Notes: a model not told the origin generated them from the sequence alone. DNA of 64,000 nt from Basidiobolus meristosporus CBS 931.73 (GCA_002104905.1 MCFE01000168.1:81672-145671), one strand, 5' to 3'. Shown: positions 15,002-25,560, numbered from the stretch's first letter. Numbers and translations are program-made.

Positions 15002-15699
15002 GGTTCAGAAATGCAGAAAAATATGAAAGAAATTGGGTGGAATTAGAATGCTACATAAAAGCAGTCCTAATCAAAACAACAGTTATTTGGGATATGTAAA
15101 TATAGAGTGGATGGTAATCCGGAAGATACCAAGTGTTCGAAAATAAAATATTATGCTATATCTCACACCGCTCACCATTCGTATTCTGGAATTTCTAAAT
15201 CAGCTGATTGTGGGAAACCGTCGATTTTATTACTCCGGGTCTATACCGAAATCCACGTAAGTCGAAGTGACCTTGACTCACACATTAGTATGAAATGTTT
15301 GACCTCGTGGTACCTTGATAGAGACCACGATTGTCTCTATTGGGTAGTATGTTTTTGATAGTGTATAGATAAATATGGTTGTCATGATAAAGGATGGTAA
15401 AATTGCGTTAGTAGGTGAGAATTTCTATATTAAGGAGGGATCAGAGAAACGGCAGAATTATTGATTGGATGTACGTCAGATAAGCTACTTCCAATCAAAC
15501 TCCGAGAGGCAACCACAGCCACTTAAAGTTTCCAGAACCACATCACGTGTGTGATAGAGCAAACGGCTATCCGAGTATTGATGGTAGGCCCCAGAGAAAT
15601 GAAGAGATTTAGGGAAAATGCTCATAAAGTTCGAAGAGTTCCATTGCTGTATCATCTCTCTTTTACTTTCGATTTAGCTATAGAAATAGAGATACAATC

Positions 15700-17221
15700 A
15701 TGAACGCCTTTAATGCTCTTCGTTTGTTAGTCAACCCTGTTAGTAAATCATTGTCCGTTGGTAGAGGTCTATCTGTTCGTGCTTTATCCAACACTGCTTC
15801 CAGAAGCTTCGCTACTGCTGAGAACGAATCGATAAAGAAAGATGCACAAACCGCTGAGGGTCTTTCAGCCGCCGCTATCCACTCCAACGGCCCAGCCCGT
15901 AATGACTGGACTAGAGAAGAGATTCAGGCTATCTATGATTCTCCATTTTTAGATCTTCTTTTCCACGCTGTAAGTATTTTCTCGGAAAGGTAGACTAAAA
16001 AGAAGAACTGACTTATGGAAAACTTCATAAATATCTAGGCCAAAGTTCATCGTGCCAACTTCAACCCTCGTGAGGTGCAGCAAGCCACCTTGTTAAGCAT
16101 CAAGACTGGTGGCTGTAGTGAAGACTGTTCCTACTGCCCTCAATCTTCTCGTCATGAAACTGAGGTGAAGGCTTCCAAGTTACTGGAGCGTGACGTTGTT
16201 CTTGATGCTGCTCGCAAGGCCAAGAATGCCGGAAGTACCCGCTTCTGTATGGGTGCTGCCTGGAGAGAGGTTGGTGGGAAAAAAACCAACTTCAACAATA
16301 TATTAGATTACGTAAAAGAGATCAGGTATTGGGTTGATTTTTCATGTGATAGTCATACAGCTCTGACCTGGTTTGAACTTCATTAGAGGAATGGGTATGG
16401 AGGTCTGTTGTACTCTCGGAATGTTGGACGAAGCTCAAGCCAAGGCCTTGAAAAATGCTGGCCTCACCGCTTATAACCATAACCTTGACACATCCAGAGA
16501 ATACTACTCCAAGGTACTGTTGTGACGTCAACGTATGTTACACATGCATGGTAATCTGATTCCATAATAGATCATCACTACTCGTACCTACGATGAGCGT
16601 CTCGAGACCATTGCTCGTGCTCGCGAAGCTGGTATCTCTGTATGTTCAGGTGGTATTATTGGACTCGGAGAATCCGAGGATGACCGAGTTGGTTTGCTTA
16701 CTACCCTAGCAACTCTTCCTGCTCACCCCGAGAGTGTCCCAATCAATGCCCTTCTCGCGGTTAAAGGAACTCCATTAGAAAACCAAGAGGTAAAGATGAT
16801 TCAATGATCGTATTCCCTTCGACCTCATTCATAACTATTGTCTGTTTAGCCTGTCAAAATATGGGATATGGTTAGAATGATCTCCACTGCTCGTATTGTC
16901 ATGCCCAAATCCATGGTTCGCTTGTCTGCCGGTAGAGTTCGGTTCTCTCAGCCTGAGCAAGCACTTTGCTTCTTTGCAGGGGCCAACTCAATCTTCACTG
17001 GCGACAAGCTGCTGACTACACCCAACAACGAATTCACTGATGATCAACTCATGTTCCAAACCCTTGGTAAGTCGTATCTCCCCTCTGGTGATACAAATCT
17101 AGTATGCTTACACTTCTGAAAAGGTCTCGTTCCCAAGCCCCCCAAATTCGAACAAAGCTCATGCAGCGGAGGCTGCAGCCACTCTGACGCTGAGCCAAAA
17201 CAGGCCGATGCTGCCAATTGA
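15700..17221 (+). CDS. BIO2: Biotin synthase (radical SAM), multi-exon, with a mitochondrial-type presequence
   Basis: [16 protein letters not shown]; [20 protein letters not shown] (CxxxCxxC); RFCMGAAWR; YNHNLDTS; [11 protein letters not shown]; [10 protein letters not shown]; RLSAGR; [16 protein letters not shown]. Confidence 0.98.
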
Positions 17222-17912
17222 ACAGTGACAGTTTCATAAATGTAAAAGCACATCTGTACACAATTCATTTTACTGTGTCATCCCAATTTATCATCCCACA
17301 TCATTTAGTACAATCATTCATTTCTCTCCAATATAATCGAAAGCTCCGCCGTTTATTTAACTTATCATGTACCTTGGCTGTGGTCGAAAAAAGTGAAATA
17401 AATAAACCGCAGGTATTCTCGGATCCGATGCTCTGATGTAATAGTCAAATTAATGAGGCTTATTCTGGAATCCTGAAGACTGTCATGTGTTACCTCTCTC
17501 GTCGCTATGAATGTTGCCTGGAAAATACCGAAACGCCGTCTGGTGGTCCGGAGTCCAAAAAAAGTCAAATTAATTTTGGTCAATCATCAATTTATGCTAT
17601 ATTGGGGCCAAGAGTTTTCACAGCCTTGGTTCACTAACCAAGGTCCTCACGTCACCAGTGCAATGATTCAGTTAGCAATCCGCTTCTTCCCCACACTGAT
17701 CGCTATCGCATTGAAGGTGGAGTCAAATGTAGGAGATTAGACAGTTCCCATTGATTAACAATAATTAACTCATGCGATATTGTTGACATATGCGCTATTG
17801 TTGATTTGCAGCTCTTTTGTGAGCGTCCATCAACCTGATTGTGAAGGCGCCAGAGGTGTATTTAAGGCCACTCTCTGCGAGGTGATTTTCCAAAGTTCAG
17901 TCGTTCTCTCCC

Positions 17913-19236
17913 ATGGCCAGCATTAGGAATACCTGTCTTTTACTTTGGACATCCCTTGTGATATTTGCATCTGGTCACACAGCCCAGATCAATGTCAACC
18001 TTCCCAGATCACTAAGCTCAAAGCCGAGCGTTTGCACGAGCACGCTCATTGCAAATGGGAACCTCATCGACACCAAGACCAAGAAATCCTGGCTGGCAGA
18101 TATCCTAGTCAGAGACGGGCGTGTGGCGGCGATCAAAAAGGCTGGGTCAATCCCTAAACACCTTGCTTCCCAGGTGGTCGATGCCACAGGGCTATTCGTT
18201 ACTCCTGGTCTAGTGGACCTTCATACCCATATTTACTGGGGGGCCACATATTGGGGAATAGAGGCTGATCCTGTAGCTGCGCGAAGTGGGGTTACGACCT
18301 GGAATGACGCTGGTAGCAGTGGCGCATATACTTTTCCCGGACTACGTAAATTCGTAATCAACCAAACCCGTGCGAGGGCTTTCGTGTTCCTTAATATTGC
18401 CGCGCAAGGGTTGACCTCGCGCATCTTACGAGTTGATCAAGGCCAGTGATGTGGCTGATGTGGAGCTGGCGCTATGGACAATTGGTAACAATACTGATGT
18501 TATCAAAGGAATCAAAGTGCGGATGGATTCCGATGCAACCTCCGGCTCAGGTTTAGAGGGGTTGAAGCGGGCTCGCCAGGTTGCTGACAAGACGAAGCTT
18601 CCCATCATGGTCCACATCGGTCATACTCCTCCTGTAATTGAAGATATCGCAGAATACCTCGGCAAAGGCGACATTTTGACCCATTGTTTCAATGGACATG
18701 AGAATCGTTTAATAGACAATAGCGGAAAATTACGGCCAGTTGTCCATACGTTGAAGAGTAAAGGAGTCCATTTTGACATTGGCCATGGCGGCGGTAGCTT
18801 TGACTACACTGTGGCTGAAAAGATGATTGCTGACGGCTTCATGCCCGATTCGGTGAGCTCTGATTTACACCAGATCTCTACTCTCGGTAGTGCACAAGAT
18901 CTCCCGACCGTTCTTTCCAAGTTACTCAACCTCGGGATTCCTCTGGAAGAGCTTATCGCCAAGGCTACTTTGGTTCCAGCAAGAATCATTGGTCATCCCG
19001 AACTTGGCCGTCTACAGGTGGGTGGCCCGGCGGATATAGCCATTTTCCGTCTTGAGCATGGTCAATTTCATTTCACCGACAATGCGGGGAATAAACGCAA
19101 TGGTACCATGAGAATTGTAAATACTCACACATTCAGGGATGGCATACCCATGCCACACGTTGAGGCCGAGCCTGCTGCTTCCTGGGCGATTAGGGATGCT
19201 GGTGTGGTGTCTGGAGTGAAGCCTCCAACTATGTAG
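17913..19236 (+). CDS. Amidohydrolase-superfamily metallohydrolase (COG3964/PRK09237-like deacetylase or dihydroorotase-like), intronless, with an N-terminal signal peptide and one frameshift at about 18423-18426
   Basis: ORFs 17913-18449 and 18433-19236 join into about 440 aa if one base is removed. Metal-site motifs: PGLVDLHTH (HxH), GVTTWNDAGS, GIKVR (carbamylated Lys position), MVHIG, DILTHC, FDIGHG and SSDLH. Confidence 0.85.
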
Positions 19237-19412
19237 CCAACCCTCTCGATCTGATATCATCAATATACCCTAACCAAAAAGTGAATCTTCGTGGACAACT
19301 TTATGTAATTTCTGTTGTGCTGAATGAACCTCCACACCTTAGTGTCATACATAAGAATGTCTATACACTAGTCTGTCAAAATAATAAACGTAAATATTAC
19401 ATGTGTACAATG

Positions 19413-20211
19413 CTAGAGGTAGCCTTTCCCGTGGCACACTGAACAAACAGATGGCGCCAGGGTGTTGGCTAGGCTAGATATGATGGAGAATTGATTGGGA
19501 CGGTTTTGGCCTAAACCCGAACGGATTAGTTACTCGAATTCAGCAAAGTTTGGTGGTACTCTGTGTATCTCACTTACCCTGACACTTGTAGCATGGTCGG
19601 CCTTTAACAACATAAACGCCGGGCGCAATCATGGTTCCTGGCTGGTTGGCAGCTGAGTTGATTAATTGTTGTCCATACGGACAGTGTGTGCAGAGCTTTC
19701 CTGGTCGTTTCCAACCGCGATTGTCACAGTAGCCACATACGAAGTTAGGATTGAACGGTCCAGTTGGTGGAACGATTGAGTAACTGCCGGGTCTTATCTG
19801 GTTGTATCCAGCTATAGGCTGTTGAGGGGCTGAGGGCCACTGCTGCGGATATTGCGGAAAAGGTATTGGTGGAATGCTGGGCTGTATGGCAGTGTTATGT
19901 GGAGGGTTGGCGAGGTAGCCGTTTGGCGTTATTGGCCTATATAGATTACTACCAGGGGAATAATAGGACGTAGTTGAGGTTGAAGGCCCCGGTTGGTAGT
20001 TTTGTTGAAAGGCTTGTGTTCGAGGAGGTTGAAACTGAGGGTTAGCTTGCGGGGATGCATTTCCGTATGGCGAGGGTGTGGCTAAATTTGGGCGCACACC
20101 TTGGTCTGCAATAATTTCATGCTGTTCAGGGAAACGTGTGTATGGCGGAGGTGGCTCAGAAGGTGTTGTTTCGTCATTCAGATCTTGGGAGAGTTGCTGG
20201 TTTGTATTCAT
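19413..20211 (-). CDS. Pro/Gln-rich protein with a PPPY motif and four CxxC pairs (Hua1-like, DnaJ-type Zn-finger); intron 19511-19577
   Basis: EPPPPYTRF; CGYCDNRG, CTHC, CYKCQG|GQ and, after splicing, CSVCHGKGYL* (TAG at 19413-19415). Confidence 0.75.
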
Positions 20212-20540
20212 GACTTCAAGTTCATAATTTTTGGGATTCTGACTTTGTTATATCTGCGAAAGCATGCGTTGACTAATTAGGACAATGCCAAGCATGGCTT
20301 GTGTATCCACGTGATCCAAGGTCACGTGGATCTATTGTTGGTGTAAATTGAATTCTCGAAGATCAAGGACTTTGGATTTAATATCGATTGTATCTACATA
20401 CAGTACATTGGCCGTGTATGATGGGTGAATGAGTATAATAGAGATAGGTTAAATGCCAAGTGAACAGTTGGAGAGAGGAGATATGCAAAAGAGAACAAAG
20501 AAGTGGTTGGTATAGTGAAATTCTATATGGGGCCAACTTG

Positions 20541-22224
20541 TTAGATCTGGCGAACCAACACCTGCATCTTTCTAAGAACAGCAACAAAAACGCCGGCGGC
20601 AAGGATCGTCGAGAACCCTGCTACCATGGAGAAGGCATATGGGTTGTCCTCATAGAAAGAGGTCAAATTCATACCAAAGAGACAGGCCACAAACGAACCT
20701 GCCCCCAATCCAAGTGTTCCCATGGTGATTTTCAGTTCAAGTAAGAGTAGGTTGTTCCGCTGAGAATCGAGTATAATATTAACAATATCCTCGGTGGTTT
20801 TTGTATTAGCGCTGACTGCTGCGACTGTATTCGCAATTTCCTCCACTTGCTTTAGGTAAGTCTCCAACAAAAGCTCCACATCGTCGCTTTGCGACGCTAG
20901 GTTCTGCAGGCCTTCTTTTTTGGCTGTCAAATACATGGCCTCCAGATCCTCATCTAAATCGCCGCTTATCAATACTCTGCACGAATGCTCCAGTAAACAG
21001 GCTGGGTACATACCTTGCTCTAGCACTTCTAAGATGGCATCTCTAATGTTCAAGGTACGCTGTTCAAATTTGGAAAGGCGCTTAGAGTACTGCAATAATT
21101 CTTTCAGCTTGTCTCTGTCGATGGACTCTTCTAGATACGAGAGTAGATTGGTGACCAAGCTAACAAGCACCTCCATCTCGCTTTGCAACGAGCTAACCAC
21201 GCTAATCATTATCGCTTCCAGTGCCCTGAAAATAACCTGTCGTTAGCGCGATTCTCCTGAAAGTCCCGAATATAAAATACCTGAATTCGAAGGCGAGTTG
21301 GTGATCTTTATTGCTCTGCGCGCTTAGTCGTTCCTGCAGGTCGTAGATGAAAATCGATTGATTGTAACTATCGCTGGATCCATATGAATCGAACAACACG
21401 ACTGCATCCGCTTTGATCAACGCTCTGATGTGAGCAAGGTGAACCAGAATGGCCTCTTTGCGCACCAAGATGGCTGGCATTTGATTCACGAAATTACTAT
21501 CGATCTTGAAAACGTACAGGCCGATACTTCATTAGAATCTTTCACGCTTGCATCATTCCATGTGACATGATCTTTACCTTTCTAAGGTCACGCGCCTTTG
21601 AATTGAAACCAAGCAAGAAATCGCGTATATAAGTATGCAGACAAGAAAAGGAGAGACTGGATGGCCGGACACTATACCTGTAGTCCATGCTGTTTTGGAT
21701 TGTGAGAAAACATCCGGGTTTAGTAGGGGAGTCGAGGGGACGCTCACGAAAACGAACATCGTACCTGAGTACACAATTCGAGCTTTGAAAATTCACCAGC
21801 TGTGATTTTTACGTTTCCTCTATGGTCAAATTCTGTACCTTGAATATGGTGTGAACAAAAGAATCTTTAAGAAAGCCGGTATTCGAGTCACTATACATTT
21901 CAGCTTCAGCTCGTTAGCCTGGTTACTGGCAGGGGTAGGTATAGGTCTAACTGGGAGGTTTCGTCTATATGTCGTTTTAGCAGAAAAGAAGGAGGTGTCG
22001 GGGCGGGAGTAATTGGCCGTGCGTTGCTTTTGTGCTTGCAAGATGCGTCCGAGCATCGTTTGCGGTCTTTTGGAACGATCGGCAGAGAAGAAGGAGCGAG
22101 ATGCTGCACACGAGGTTCTAGCAGAAAGGAATACCGTTTGTGCACTGGCTGGCCCATATCGGCCCATAGGCTTTGCCCAGCATGTAACTTGACTAGTGAA
22201 AGTAGTCCGTAGGACTTTAAACAT
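20541..22224 (-). CDS. MRS2: Mitochondrial Mg2+ channel, Mrs2/Lpe10 (CorA family), multi-exon
   Basis: PAILVRKEAILVHLAHIRALIKADAVVLFD; LAFEFRALE; ELLLETYLKQVEE; ILDSQRNNLLLLELK; LFGMNL (GMN signature) followed by a TM helix; presequence-like N-terminus. Confidence 0.95.
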
Positions 22225-22744
22225 GAAGCTTACTTTGAGGAATAAGGCAGGCCAGTTGGTAAAAGAAGATATGTGGGAGTATTAGGATGTGTCCTCTGAA
22301 AGTATGTACAGAGAATCACTGAGTGTGCTGTCCAAAACAAGTCCGTACAAAGTAAACTCTCGTCCAAAATAATATATAGCCAAATGTTAGCCGTCTTCAC
22401 AATCCGATTTGTAGCTTTGGACCAGAAGATAAGTTTTTTCGGACGATTTTTTTGTTCAACCTTCTGCGGATTAATCAAACCTTAGGGAAACTAGTCATAA
22501 ATATTGCTCATCAATTTGCGGGTCCACATACTCGTATTCAGCTGGAGGGAGTACACGTTTGCCGAAAACCAATGTATTCTCGAATAGATGTCACGTTACT
22601 CACCTTGATTTGGAATTCCGATAACCTCGAGCTCTCGGATGATGAATACCAAATGGCTGTCAAGCTCCGCGACAGGTACTTTAAATACCAAGGTGTCATA
22701 CTCATAAAATCTAATCTTGTTCAGCATTGGATAAGCTCCCCATA

Positions 22745-25560
22745 ATGGCCTATCTACCGAAACGTTTTCTTCCCCATCAGATATTTGCTGCAAACACCGA
22801 CGTTGGGAAAACCATTTTCTCCACTGCCTTATGTCGCGGTGTTGCTGCAAGATATCCCAACAGTTCTATCTACTATCTCAAACCAGTTCAAACTGGTTAC
22901 CCTGTAGATAGCGACGCCAGGTACAGATATAGGAATACTAGCGCTATGACTGCCCACCTTAACCCTTCAGTGTTCGTTGTTCAATGAATCCAGGCACGCC
23001 AAGAAATTCTGCCCTAGAATCACTGCTGCAGACACACTGTACACTTATAAGGATCCCGTCAGCCCGCATATAGCGACTACTACTGTGAGTCTTCTTTATA
23101 TATCTGTATTCCTAGGCTTTATGCTCGCATTGGCTTATCCGCTTTTGCTTGAATGAAAATACAGCCCCCTTCGGATGTTAGTGTGCTACAATCCGTTCGT
23201 ACCAAAATCGAAGAATATGCGAAAGAGAGCAAGGGAAAAGACGCTTTCATGTTCCTTGAAACCGCTGGAGGTACAGAATAGCAAAATCTTTTTTGTGTGT
23301 AAGAGCAACTGATTTGACCTCGTATTTGTAGGAGTAAACAGCCCCGTCATGTCAGGTTGAGTAATACACAATATCAATTGAAGTCAGACTTCACGGACTG
23401 ACCCATTTCTATTGTAACTCTTGTTCTGAATACTAGGAACGTTACAATGCAATTTCTATCGTCCATTACGGCTTCCTACCCTACTTGTCGCCGATTCGAA
23501 ACTTGGCGGCATTTCTACTACCTTATCTTCCTTCGAATCGCTACACGTCCGTGGATATGACGTGAACACTGTATTGTTATTTGAGGATGACAGCTGGAAG
23601 AACAATGAATTTTTGGCCAAGCAATTACCGGAAGATATTCGGGTGTTTTCAATCCCCTCCCCTCCGGCTCGTCAGCCCAACAGAGATGATACCATGGAGA
23701 TGAGCCAGTACTACGCTCAGATAGACGAGGTCTTCAAGAATGTTGCAGAGCATCTAAAGGATAGAAGCGATGAGAGAATCACGCGATTGATGGAGATGGA
23801 GGCCAAAACAAAGGATGTGATCTGGTGGCCTTTTACTCAACACCACAACGTGAAGAATGTTACAGTTATCGATTCTGCTTGCGGTGATATGATGGTCACA
23901 CTAGACCCTAAAGCCAAGGACTCCAAGGAGGACTCTAATCTGTTTAATGAGAAGTTTGATGGGTGTGCCAGCTGGTGGACTCAAGGTCTTGGACATGGAT
24001 CCCCTTCTTTGAGCATGGCTACTGCGCATGCTGCCGGTAGATATGGCCACGTTATAGCTCCCGAATGTACTAATGAGCTGTCGCTCTCATTGGCCGAGAA
24101 GCTAGTTGGTACAGTTGGTAAGGGTTGGGCTCAGCGCGTGTACTATTCGGACAATGGAAGCACTGCAACTGAAATTGCACTGAAGATGGCGCTTAGACAC
24201 ACCGCCAATAAGCATCAGCTATCCAGTAGCGCCGAGAAGAGTGAGGACATCGAGATCATTGGATTAAAGGGAAGCTATCATGGAGACACCATAGGTGCCA
24301 TGGATGCATGTGATCCCAATGTTTACAACGGCACCATTCATTGGTAAGAGTCTGTATGCGGCATTTATCCAGCAGTCCGTTCTTTTCTAAATTGGCAATC
24401 AGGTACCAACCTAGAGGCTTCTGGTTTGATCCACCCACCGTGTCCATGAAAAATGGTGTCTACAACATCCATGTCCCTGAGTCATTCAAGTGCAGCTCTG
24501 TTGGTGAGACTAATTTCTCCTCTTTGAGCGGAGTATTTGGTGATCGCTCCAAAAGCGCACTGGCTGATTTCTATCGATCATATATCGATAAGACCCTAGA
24601 TGGTCTCATCAAACAAGGAAGACGCTTCGGTGCCTTGATGATGGAGCCAATACTGATGGGCGCTGGGGGTATGATCTTTGTAGATCCTCTGTTCCAGAAA
24701 TCTCTGGTCGAGGCGGCGAGAGATCTACGATACACGGACACCAGCGACAAAGGTATTCCGGTGATTCTTGACGAAGTGTTCACTGGGTTCTGGCGTCTTG
24801 GAAGAAGAAGCGCAGCAGAGATTCTGGGCGTGGTAAGGATTTTTTGCAGAGTGCATGCCACCGCACCCGACTAAAACTATCTTCCCCTACAGAAACCCGA
24901 TATTGCCGCGTACGCAAAGCTCTTAACTGGAGGCCTTGTTCCTCTTGCGGTGACCTTGACTAGCGAAGAGATATTCAAATCATTCTACTCTCCCAACAAG
25001 CATGAAGCATTATTGCATGGGCACTCATACACTGCGCATCCAATTGGCTGCTCAGTTGCTCTCCAATCCATTAAGGAATACGAACAGAAGTACACCTCGC
25101 AATTAACCCTTCCCTCACATACATTGAATGAGCTTTCAGACAGGGATTGGTACATCTGGAATCCTGAGGTGAGCCCATCTTTTCTTACCAATGCTAGTAA
25201 TGATACTTATCACCATTCTTATGTAGACTGTGAAGCATATCTCACATTTACCCAATGTGCAAGGGGTTGTTTCACTGGGTACTGTTTTGGCCATTGAACT
25301 GAAGGATACTGAGGGAGCAGGTACATATTATTGATCAATGTGCGCAGGAGAGGCGATTCCTCTAATAACCAATGTCCACTGTAGGCTACACATCCAACGT
25401 ATCCAAAGAGTTTATCCAACACATCCGCAACATCGATGACTCAATTCAGGTGTTCGCCCGACCCCTGGGCAATGTTGTGTATGTAATGGGCTCAATTGTT
25501 ACCACACCCGAGCAGGTTAAGCAGCTGGAGAACACGATCTTGAGTGCATTGAAGCTCTAG
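22745..25560 (+). CDS. BIO3-BIO1: Bifunctional dethiobiotin synthetase / 7,8-diaminopelargonic acid aminotransferase (BioD-BioA fusion), multi-exon
   Basis: QIFAANTDVGKT P-loop; YLKPVQTG; ETAGGVNSP; LGGISTTLS; IWWPFTQH; FDGCASWWT; YSDNGSTATEIALKMA; SYHGDTIGAMD; DEVFTG; KPDIAAYAKLLTGG (PLP Lys); LLHGHSYTAHPIGC; RPLGNVVY. Confidence 0.97.

Follow-up and report, generated by a model that had tools for sequence, protein, structure and literature searches.

The gene analyzed here encodes a bacterial-type amidohydrolase and lies on the plus strand, at 17913..19236, of a 64,000-nt window from the fungus Basidiobolus meristosporus CBS 931.73 ("window" here means the whole stretch of DNA that was analyzed, and all positions are counted on it). 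Its true coding sequence is that span minus one spurious base at 18424, which gives 440 codons plus a stop, free of introns; the top match in the protein search was 100% identical, an "amidohydrolase" of B. meristosporus CBS 931.73 itself. From the 5′ end, the gene comprises a predicted Sec-type signal peptide (residues 1 to 21; 17913..17975), a linker of ~22 residues (17976..18041), and a catalytic domain (18042..19233) made of a (beta/alpha)8 barrel and a composite beta-sandwich, all on the plus strand. A TATA-like element read by eye at 17858..17870 (plus strand; gtatttaaggcc), ~45 nt upstream of the ATG, is a possible core promoter. The original prediction, made from the sequence alone, had described an intronless gene of bacterial origin, retargeted for secretion and inserted inside the biotin cluster. 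Here, we report that the gene is intact and belongs to the PRK09237 branch, which we regard as virtually certain, and we favor, with moderate confidence, an overall reading in which an old Chloroflexota-derived amidohydrolase takes a secreted form in Basidiobolus and sits among biotin genes by coincidence.

As written in the window, 17913-19236 hold two frames rather than a single open reading frame: frame 1 opens at 17913 and closes with a stop at 18447-18449, and the remainder, up to 19236, is read in frame +1 from 18415/18433. Between the codons for R and Y, the window has four bases (atct) where three are expected, and the Basidiobolus ranarum ortholog is continuous across the region of the break (GLTSRTYELIKASD). 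Four public sequencing runs were compared with 15600-20300. X1 and X2 are genomic runs with a word depth of ~260-fold and may derive from the sample used for the assembly; X3, which was made from another sample, is transcript derived, because it skips five introns (GT..AG) in BIO2 and one in a minus-strand neighbor. Base 18424 (a T on the plus strand) was omitted at full depth in all three (X1, 264.9/264.9; X2, 258.4/258.4; X3, 131.8/131.8), and without it the codons read cgc-act-tac (R170-T171-Y172), in agreement with SRTYELIK in B. ranarum. Since the runs omit the base and the CBS 931.73 assembly is PacBio based (PMC7466969), the surplus T is explained as a PacBio consensus indel error. The X3 contig is unspliced over 17926-19509; therefore, the gene is expressed and genuinely free of introns. 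In the public JGI/NCBI model (P0001; 386 amino acids), a false intron (GLR|IKVRMD) spans the error, and ~55 conserved barrel residues are lost. Two further differences were seen: the C of the assembly at 18783 is G in all runs (synonymous), and the G of the assembly and the genomic runs at 19084 is T in X3 (Ala to Ser), which may be an allele or strain difference between samples. A genomic contig of 14.8 kb covers 15600-20300 at even depth, from BIO2 through the amidohydrolase to its downstream neighbor, and this check of reads over the junctions ties the gene to its fungal flanks. The original prediction had taken the given letters as a single intact open reading frame and overlooked the break at 18424; its picture of a gene without introns among intron-rich neighbors holds for the organism (by RNA, and with five introns in BIO2) but not for those letters.

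To assign the protein to a family, the two window pieces were scored apart, and the intact B. ranarum ortholog (P0002:21-460, from M21, with residue numbering identical to that of the true window protein) served as a whole-protein proxy. Pfam gave Amidohydro_1 and Amidohydro_3, with a weak match to the EF_0837-like_N composite domain. The NCBIfam model NF006689 (PRK09237) scored 133.0 and 271.4 bits on the pieces, with profile positions 4-128 in piece 1 (ending at residue 169) and 138-368 in piece 2 (from its residue 8), and 421 bits on the intact ortholog, above the curated cutoff of 371. The ortholog is related to, but not a member of, TIGR03583 (EF_0837; 289.1 bits, cutoff 432) and NF009060 (PRK12394; 289.4 bits, cutoff 442). 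Metal-ligand residues are H104, H106, K201 (the carboxylated-lysine position), H234, H257, and D317 in the numbering of the true protein, and the motifs that carry them (DLHTH, GIKVR, MVHIG, LTHC, and SSDLH) were all found. These six positions are invariant across a 56-sequence alignment, are present in the two pieces of the window, and align with the ligand motifs of 2OGJ and 8WZY; the HxH, carboxylated Lys, two His, and Asp of the binuclear-metal amidohydrolase superfamily are complete at the sequence level. The closest PDB entries by sequence were 8wzy, 2ogj (Atu3266), 2ics (EF0837), and 8je0, with 8WZY the best match in both sequence and structure (E value, 8e-41; TM score, 0.92), and a literature search found no paper giving the function of 8WZY or 8JE0. 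A structure model of the B. ranarum ortholog, 88% identical in the catalytic domain, had a pLDDT of 90.3, contained the barrel and the composite beta-sandwich, and matched 8WZY, 8JE0, 2OGJ, and 2ICS with Foldseek TM scores of 0.87 to 0.93. Profiles, PDB matches, and the 56-sequence alignment all bear out the amidohydrolase family and full metal motif set named at the outset.

Many sources give such proteins the name dihydroorotase, which we rejected on account of an absent arginine, weak profiles, and a structural gap. In the alignment, the substrate-binding Arg that follows HxH in dihydroorotases is not present (the window reads H-T-H-I-Y-W-G), and 2OGJ has Trp81 at that position (PMC12524618). 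Dihydroorotase profile models reached E values of 1e-12 or weaker, and true dihydroorotases were the next structural matches, with E values 17 orders worse. Between B. meristosporus and B. ranarum, pN was 0.068 and pS was 0.73 (saturated), and because dN/dS is ~0.03, the enzyme is under strong purifying constraint. The 440-residue product is thus predicted from its sequence to be a working hydrolase of the binuclear-metal type, in the PRK09237/cog3964 branch to which Atu3266 belongs.

Only the best 120 matches of each protein search carry names, and among these the eukaryotes in two amidohydrolase searches were Basidiobolus and Mucoromycota only: Basidiobolus (two species), Umbelopsis (four), Hesseltinella, Gongronella, Halteromyces, and Absidia (Mucorales), with further orthologs in Calcarisporiella, Bifiguratus, and Jimgerdemannia (Endogonales). 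The nearest species-representative GTDB genomes were almost all Chloroflexota or Thermomicrobiales (45 to 52% identity), and the best bacterial protein identity was ~52 to 54%. In a 104-row tree, the fungi form one clade (support, 100/99) whose sister (100/99), within Chloroflexota, is a group with a Ktedonobacteraceae protein; a second tree of 46 rows, 13 of them fungal (2 Basidiobolus and 11 Mucoromycota), again gave the clade (100/99) and a Ktedonobacteraceae-like sister (100/98), the fungal clade being nested within Chloroflexota/Thermomicrobiota. The longest stem among the fungi is that of Basidiobolus (1.06 substitutions per site). The GC3 of the gene (0.49 to 0.52) is within that of its neighbors (0.42 to 0.55), compared with 0.65 to 0.88 in the bacterial sister group. 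Orthologs have four introns in Umbelopsis and three in Hesseltinella, at least three positions being common to both, and none in Bifiguratus, Calcarisporiella, or Basidiobolus. One fungal clade, ameliorated composition, and shared introns together argue for a single, old transfer and no recent Basidiobolus event, and we consider a single old bacterial origin of the fungal clade very probable. Supported nesting, limited eukaryotic spread among those best matches, and genomic integration, the usual marks of horizontal transfer, are all present. The bacterial origin of the original prediction, with Chloroflexi among its guesses, has therefore held up, and the phylogeny that it called for does place the gene in Chloroflexota, although the gene is not specific to Basidiobolus, with orthologs in five Mucoromycota lineages (Mucorales, Umbelopsidales, Calcarisporiella, Bifiguratus, and Endogonales).

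In five Mucoromycota lineages (Umbelopsis, Hesseltinella, Bifiguratus, Calcarisporiella, and Absidia), the amidohydrolase gene lies beside a D-serine dehydratase (DSD)-type gene (PF01168 and PF14031) and a gene for the imine deaminase RidA, in varying order and orientation (loci L002 9750-11973, L003 9571-11654, L004 711-2691, L088 3417-5686, and L090 8138-10271). We know of no earlier description of this cluster. Because DSD is a native and widespread fungal family, the foreign gene appears to have been recruited beside native genes; cotransfer of DSD with the amidohydrolase was rejected on the same broad distribution. In a Ktedonobacteria-like contig (L005), RidA follows the amidohydrolase after 17 nt; fungal and Ktedonobacteria-like RidA are 39% identical, which is usual for the RidA family and silent on cotransfer. 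Class-V aminotransferase or SelA-like pyridoxal phosphate (PLP) enzymes occurred in ~5 of 88 bacterial flanking open reading frames, and these heterogeneous flanks showed no conserved bacterial operon from which the substrate could be named. Mucor has DSD with neither RidA nor the amidohydrolase beside it, and a Basidiobolus DSD was absent from the best 120 of 163 DSD matches. Some side observations were made at these loci. A TnpB/Fanzor-like gene (PF07282; L003 4058-5089) lies 3 kb upstream of the Hesseltinella ortholog, and the Ktedonobacteria-like one has an IS605 OrfB gene (L005 5034-6236) 1.8 kb upstream. DSDs annotated in the genomes of the fungus gnats Bradysia odoriphaga (P0235) and Pseudolycoriella hygida (P0249) rank among the Mucoromycota proteins, with 49 to 52% identity to Calcarisporiella, and could reflect fungus-to-insect transfer or contamination.

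The Basidiobolus proteins carry an N-terminal extension of ~43 residues that is found in neither the other fungal proteins nor the closest bacterial ones. In B. meristosporus, it begins with MASIR and a 15-residue uncharged core (TCLLLWTSLVIFASG), the order being MASIR, TCLLLWTSLVIFA, and A-S-G before H22, with cleavage predicted after A-S-G, and continues into the Basidiobolus-specific linker (HTAQINVNLPRSLSSKPSVCTS), which joins the leader to the catalytic domain and is 50% identical between the species. In both species, the n-region is basic (MASIR or MVNLK), the core has 13 to 15 uncharged residues, and A-S-G or A-S-S precedes a divergent linker; identity between the two is 48% for the leader, compared with 88% for the domain, and the design of the leader is nonetheless kept. 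A basic n-region, a hydrophobic core within 7 to 15 residues, and small amino acids at −3 and −1 are what a Sec signal peptide looks like. M1 is the sole Met ahead of the HxH (H104), and B. meristosporus has no in-frame start upstream; the leader must, therefore, be translated. In the structure model, residues 1 to 38 are disordered, with a leader pLDDT below 50 and a short helix at 10 to 16. The mature protein has two Cys residues in B. meristosporus and three in B. ranarum, versus four to seven in the relatives counted. Secretory targeting of the Basidiobolus enzyme is likely on these features, and retargeting for secretion, as first proposed, finds backing in a leader that is confined to Basidiobolus and keeps its design in two species. 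The accompanying remark that the family is cytosolic holds only in part: the closest bacterial and fungal relatives are leaderless, but among 222 relatives collected ~50 are extended at the N terminus, and the majority of the extended ones that were inspected bear twin-arginine (Tat) leaders, so that exported forms are common. These bacterial cog3964 proteins (including P0030-P0036, P0040, P0041, P0097-P0104, and P0116-P0120) are probably periplasmic enzymes, and the Basidiobolus leader was gained independently.

Upstream of the amidohydrolase gene, BIO2 (biotin synthase; Pfam Radical_SAM and BATS) lies at 15700..17190 (plus strand), with the five introns skipped in X3 at 15969-16039, 16323-16385, 16511-16569, 16787-16848, and 17065-17123 (plus strand). 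Downstream are a gene for a P/Q-rich protein whose C-terminal part is rich in Cys (19440..20211, minus strand, low end approximate; intron, 19510-19576; no Pfam family; B. ranarum ortholog, 228 amino acids), an MRS2-like mitochondrial Mg2+ transporter gene (20541..22224, minus strand; Pfam MRS2-like; same position in B. ranarum), and a BIO3-BIO1 fusion of dethiobiotin synthetase and DAPA aminotransferase (22727..25300, plus strand; Pfam AAA_26 and Aminotran_3; B. ranarum ortholog, 760 amino acids). RNA shows a terminal intron in the P/Q-rich gene, so the true stop is not at 19570, where the listed open reading frame ends; the contig of its transcript runs into the 3′ end of the amidohydrolase, so that the two convergent transcripts overlap or abut. 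Gene order is identical in B. ranarum (BIO2, amidohydrolase, the 228-amino-acid gene, MRS2, and BIO3-BIO1), and in both Basidiobolus species 5.5 kb and three unrelated genes separate BIO2 from BIO3-BIO1. BIO genes were not near any ortholog outside Basidiobolus in the ortholog neighborhoods examined. The description "inside the biotin cluster" is right in that BIO2 and BIO3-BIO1 flank the gene, but it is overstated, as the P/Q-rich and MRS2 genes also lie between them; this position has been passed down within the genus and probably reflects coincidence.

We propose that a single ancient transfer from a Ktedonobacteria-like Chloroflexota bacterium would have brought the gene into early "zygomycete" fungi. 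The Mucoromycota would have kept a leaderless ortholog beside the native DSD and the RidA imine deaminase, where the amidohydrolase could deacylate an acylated D-Ser-like amino acid, PLP-dependent dehydration would follow, and RidA would then hydrolyze the enamine/imine; an acylated D-Ser-like substrate is suggested because the orthologs cluster with DSD and RidA. In Basidiobolus, the linkage to DSD and RidA would have been lost and the 21-residue Sec-type signal peptide and ~22-residue linker gained, with fast evolution on the stem branch and retention of all catalytic residues, yielding an enzyme of the secretory pathway or the extracellular space that may hydrolyze small N-acyl or O-acyl carboxylates. 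A changed role in Basidiobolus is likely because no DSD or RidA is nearby, no Basidiobolus DSD ranks in the matches given above, and the stem is the longest among the fungi; that role is predicted to be, probably, extracellular. The assignment of the substrates to small acyl compounds resembling acyl-D-amino acids is tentative. Doubtful, if possible, is the fuller scenario in which the enzyme was wired into the D-serine-type cluster of Mucoromycota and, in Basidiobolus, was pulled out and secreted, harvesting, in gut or dung, acylated D-amino acids or comparable compounds made by bacteria or, with lower likelihood, biotinyl amides that would serve the neighboring BIO genes.

Several other explanations were weighed against this proposal. 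It is extremely unlikely that the frame break is real and marks a pseudogene, or one rescued by the intron of the public model: the break does stand in the window letters, and P0001 joins GLR to IKVRMD, but base 18424 is missing from every read of three runs (X1 and X2 possibly share the assembly's sample yet are separate reads, and X3 does not), the RNA contig is uninterrupted over the supposed intron, that intron would remove the ~55 conserved barrel residues, and a dN/dS of ~0.03 is at odds with a pseudogene. An intron at the break itself was ruled out, with only ~34 nt between profile positions 128 and 138 and continuous RNA. A contaminant or chimeric assembly, in favor of which nothing was found, can be set aside for practical purposes, given the one genomic contig at even depth, an RNA contig that runs on into a neighbor with a spliceosomal intron, and the identical gene order in the independent B. 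ranarum assembly. The lack of introns would suit a recent, direct transfer from a gut bacterium to Basidiobolus, a genus in which 2 to 5% of genes are reported to be candidates for bacterial origin, most of them lacking introns (Tabima et al. 2020, PMC7466969); such an event is nevertheless highly improbable, as Basidiobolus joins 11 Mucoromycota sequences (100/99) and no bacterium, bacterial identity is at best ~52 to 54%, GC3 equals that of the fungal neighbors, and the gene is also present, and syntenic, in B. ranarum. It is unlikely that the leader is a membrane anchor or an organelle-targeting sequence: the B. ranarum model does extend 20 residues further upstream, but B. meristosporus has no in-frame start before M1, a hydrophobic core of 13 to 15 residues is too short for a typical membrane span, the residues at −3 and −1 are small in both species (A-S-G and A-S-S), there is a single basic residue and no amphipathic Arg-rich pattern, and the C terminus has neither HDEL nor a hydrophobic tail. 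We judge very unlikely, finally, the biotin salvage idea of the original prediction, in which a secreted enzyme releases biotin from biocytin or biotinyl amides in a combined synthesis-and-scavenging locus. The gene does sit between BIO2 and BIO3-BIO1, the order is retained in B. ranarum despite saturated synonymous sites, and scavenging would suit a secreted hydrolase; the evidence is one of position, however, and the P/Q-rich and MRS2 genes occupy the same interval. BIO neighbors were seen in the genus only, five Mucoromycota orthologs adjoin DSD and RidA, and BIO families are missing from the 25 most frequent of 54 families in the 88 bacterial flanking open reading frames. Known biotinidases have a nitrilase superfamily fold with a Glu-Lys-Cys triad, and the fold here, from the structure model, is an amidohydrolase barrel.

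Closest to the preferred account is a variant of it, in which Basidiobolus acquired the already-fungal gene from a Mucoromycota fungus and not by descent, and to which we give appreciable but lesser weight. Jimgerdemannia branches outside a 99/97 group that holds Basidiobolus, and an AU test of Mucoromycota monophyly gave a P value of 0.009 with the long-branched Jimgerdemannia; the values were 0.29 without Jimgerdemannia and 0.38 in the 104-row tree, and Basidiobolus is itself long stemmed (1.06), which weakens a fungus-to-fungus placement. Along with these test values, the following points count against an old Chloroflexota-derived enzyme that was clustered in Mucoromycota and secreted in Basidiobolus. 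The route into Basidiobolus is inferred, be it vertical descent or fungus-to-fungus transfer, and more distant fungal relatives could exist outside the best 120 matches. Bacterial flanks are heterogeneous, with RidA in 3 of 88 flanking open reading frames by Pfam and at 6 loci by tblastn. DSD and RidA were not found near the gene in Basidiobolus or Jimgerdemannia (the window, L001, and L089), and the Mucoromycota pathway may not be applicable to Basidiobolus. Gene association is what suggests the substrate class, and secretion is predicted from sequence features of the classical kind. The RNA contig, with its first base at 17926, 13 nt past the ATG, does not define the transcript start.

With these points weighed, an old acquisition from Chloroflexota, followed by different fates in Mucoromycota and Basidiobolus, remains the account we prefer. 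It offers a well-supported case of an old Chloroflexota-to-fungus transfer, long kept in several early-diverging fungal orders, and the two fates of the one acquired gene would be recruitment into a cluster in Mucoromycota and secretory retargeting in Basidiobolus. The DSD/RidA cluster gives a concrete, testable lead as to what cog3964 enzymes naturally act on, for which no natural substrate is, as far as we know, on record. For the public record, the analysis corrects a one-base error in the reference and a protein model short of ~55 catalytic-barrel residues. It opens no new kind of biology, and biotin salvage has no support beyond position.

Among known systems, Atu3266 (2OGJ) has the same fold (TM score, 0.87 to 0.91), ~33 to 35% identity, and six shared metal-ligand positions. 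Ornelas et al., in 2013, are said to have found acetyl-(R)-mandelate to be its best substrate, with N-acetyl-D-serine as a weak first hit; the latter fits the acylated D-Ser-like substrate suggested by the cluster. Both Atu3266 and the Basidiobolus enzyme are without the substrate-binding Arg of dihydroorotases (PMC12524618); unlike Atu3266, the Basidiobolus enzyme is eukaryotic and has a predicted Sec-type signal peptide and a linker. Fold and ligands are likewise the same in EF0837 (2ICS; TIGR03583), 8WZY, and 8JE0, but the Basidiobolus-type enzyme falls under the TIGR03583 cutoff (289 versus 432 bits) and so belongs to another equivalog than EF0837. The Tat-exported bacterial members are, like the Basidiobolus enzyme as predicted, an exported form of the same family; they use the bacterial Tat system, whereas the Basidiobolus leader would take the eukaryotic Sec/endoplasmic reticulum route. 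The bacterial genes reported in Basidiobolus by Tabima et al. (2020, PMC7466969) are similarly of bacterial type, intronless, set among fungal genes, and host-like in composition; compared with them, the amidohydrolase is much older and common to Mucoromycota, and the Ktedonobacteria-like Chloroflexota, as its donors, are associated with soil and not with the gut. The Mucoromycota orthologs belong to the same fungal clade, go back to one bacterial ancestor, and are 45 to 53% identical to the Basidiobolus protein, from which they differ in being leaderless, in having introns in some cases, and in being clustered, in five lineages, with DSD and RidA, none of them near BIO genes.

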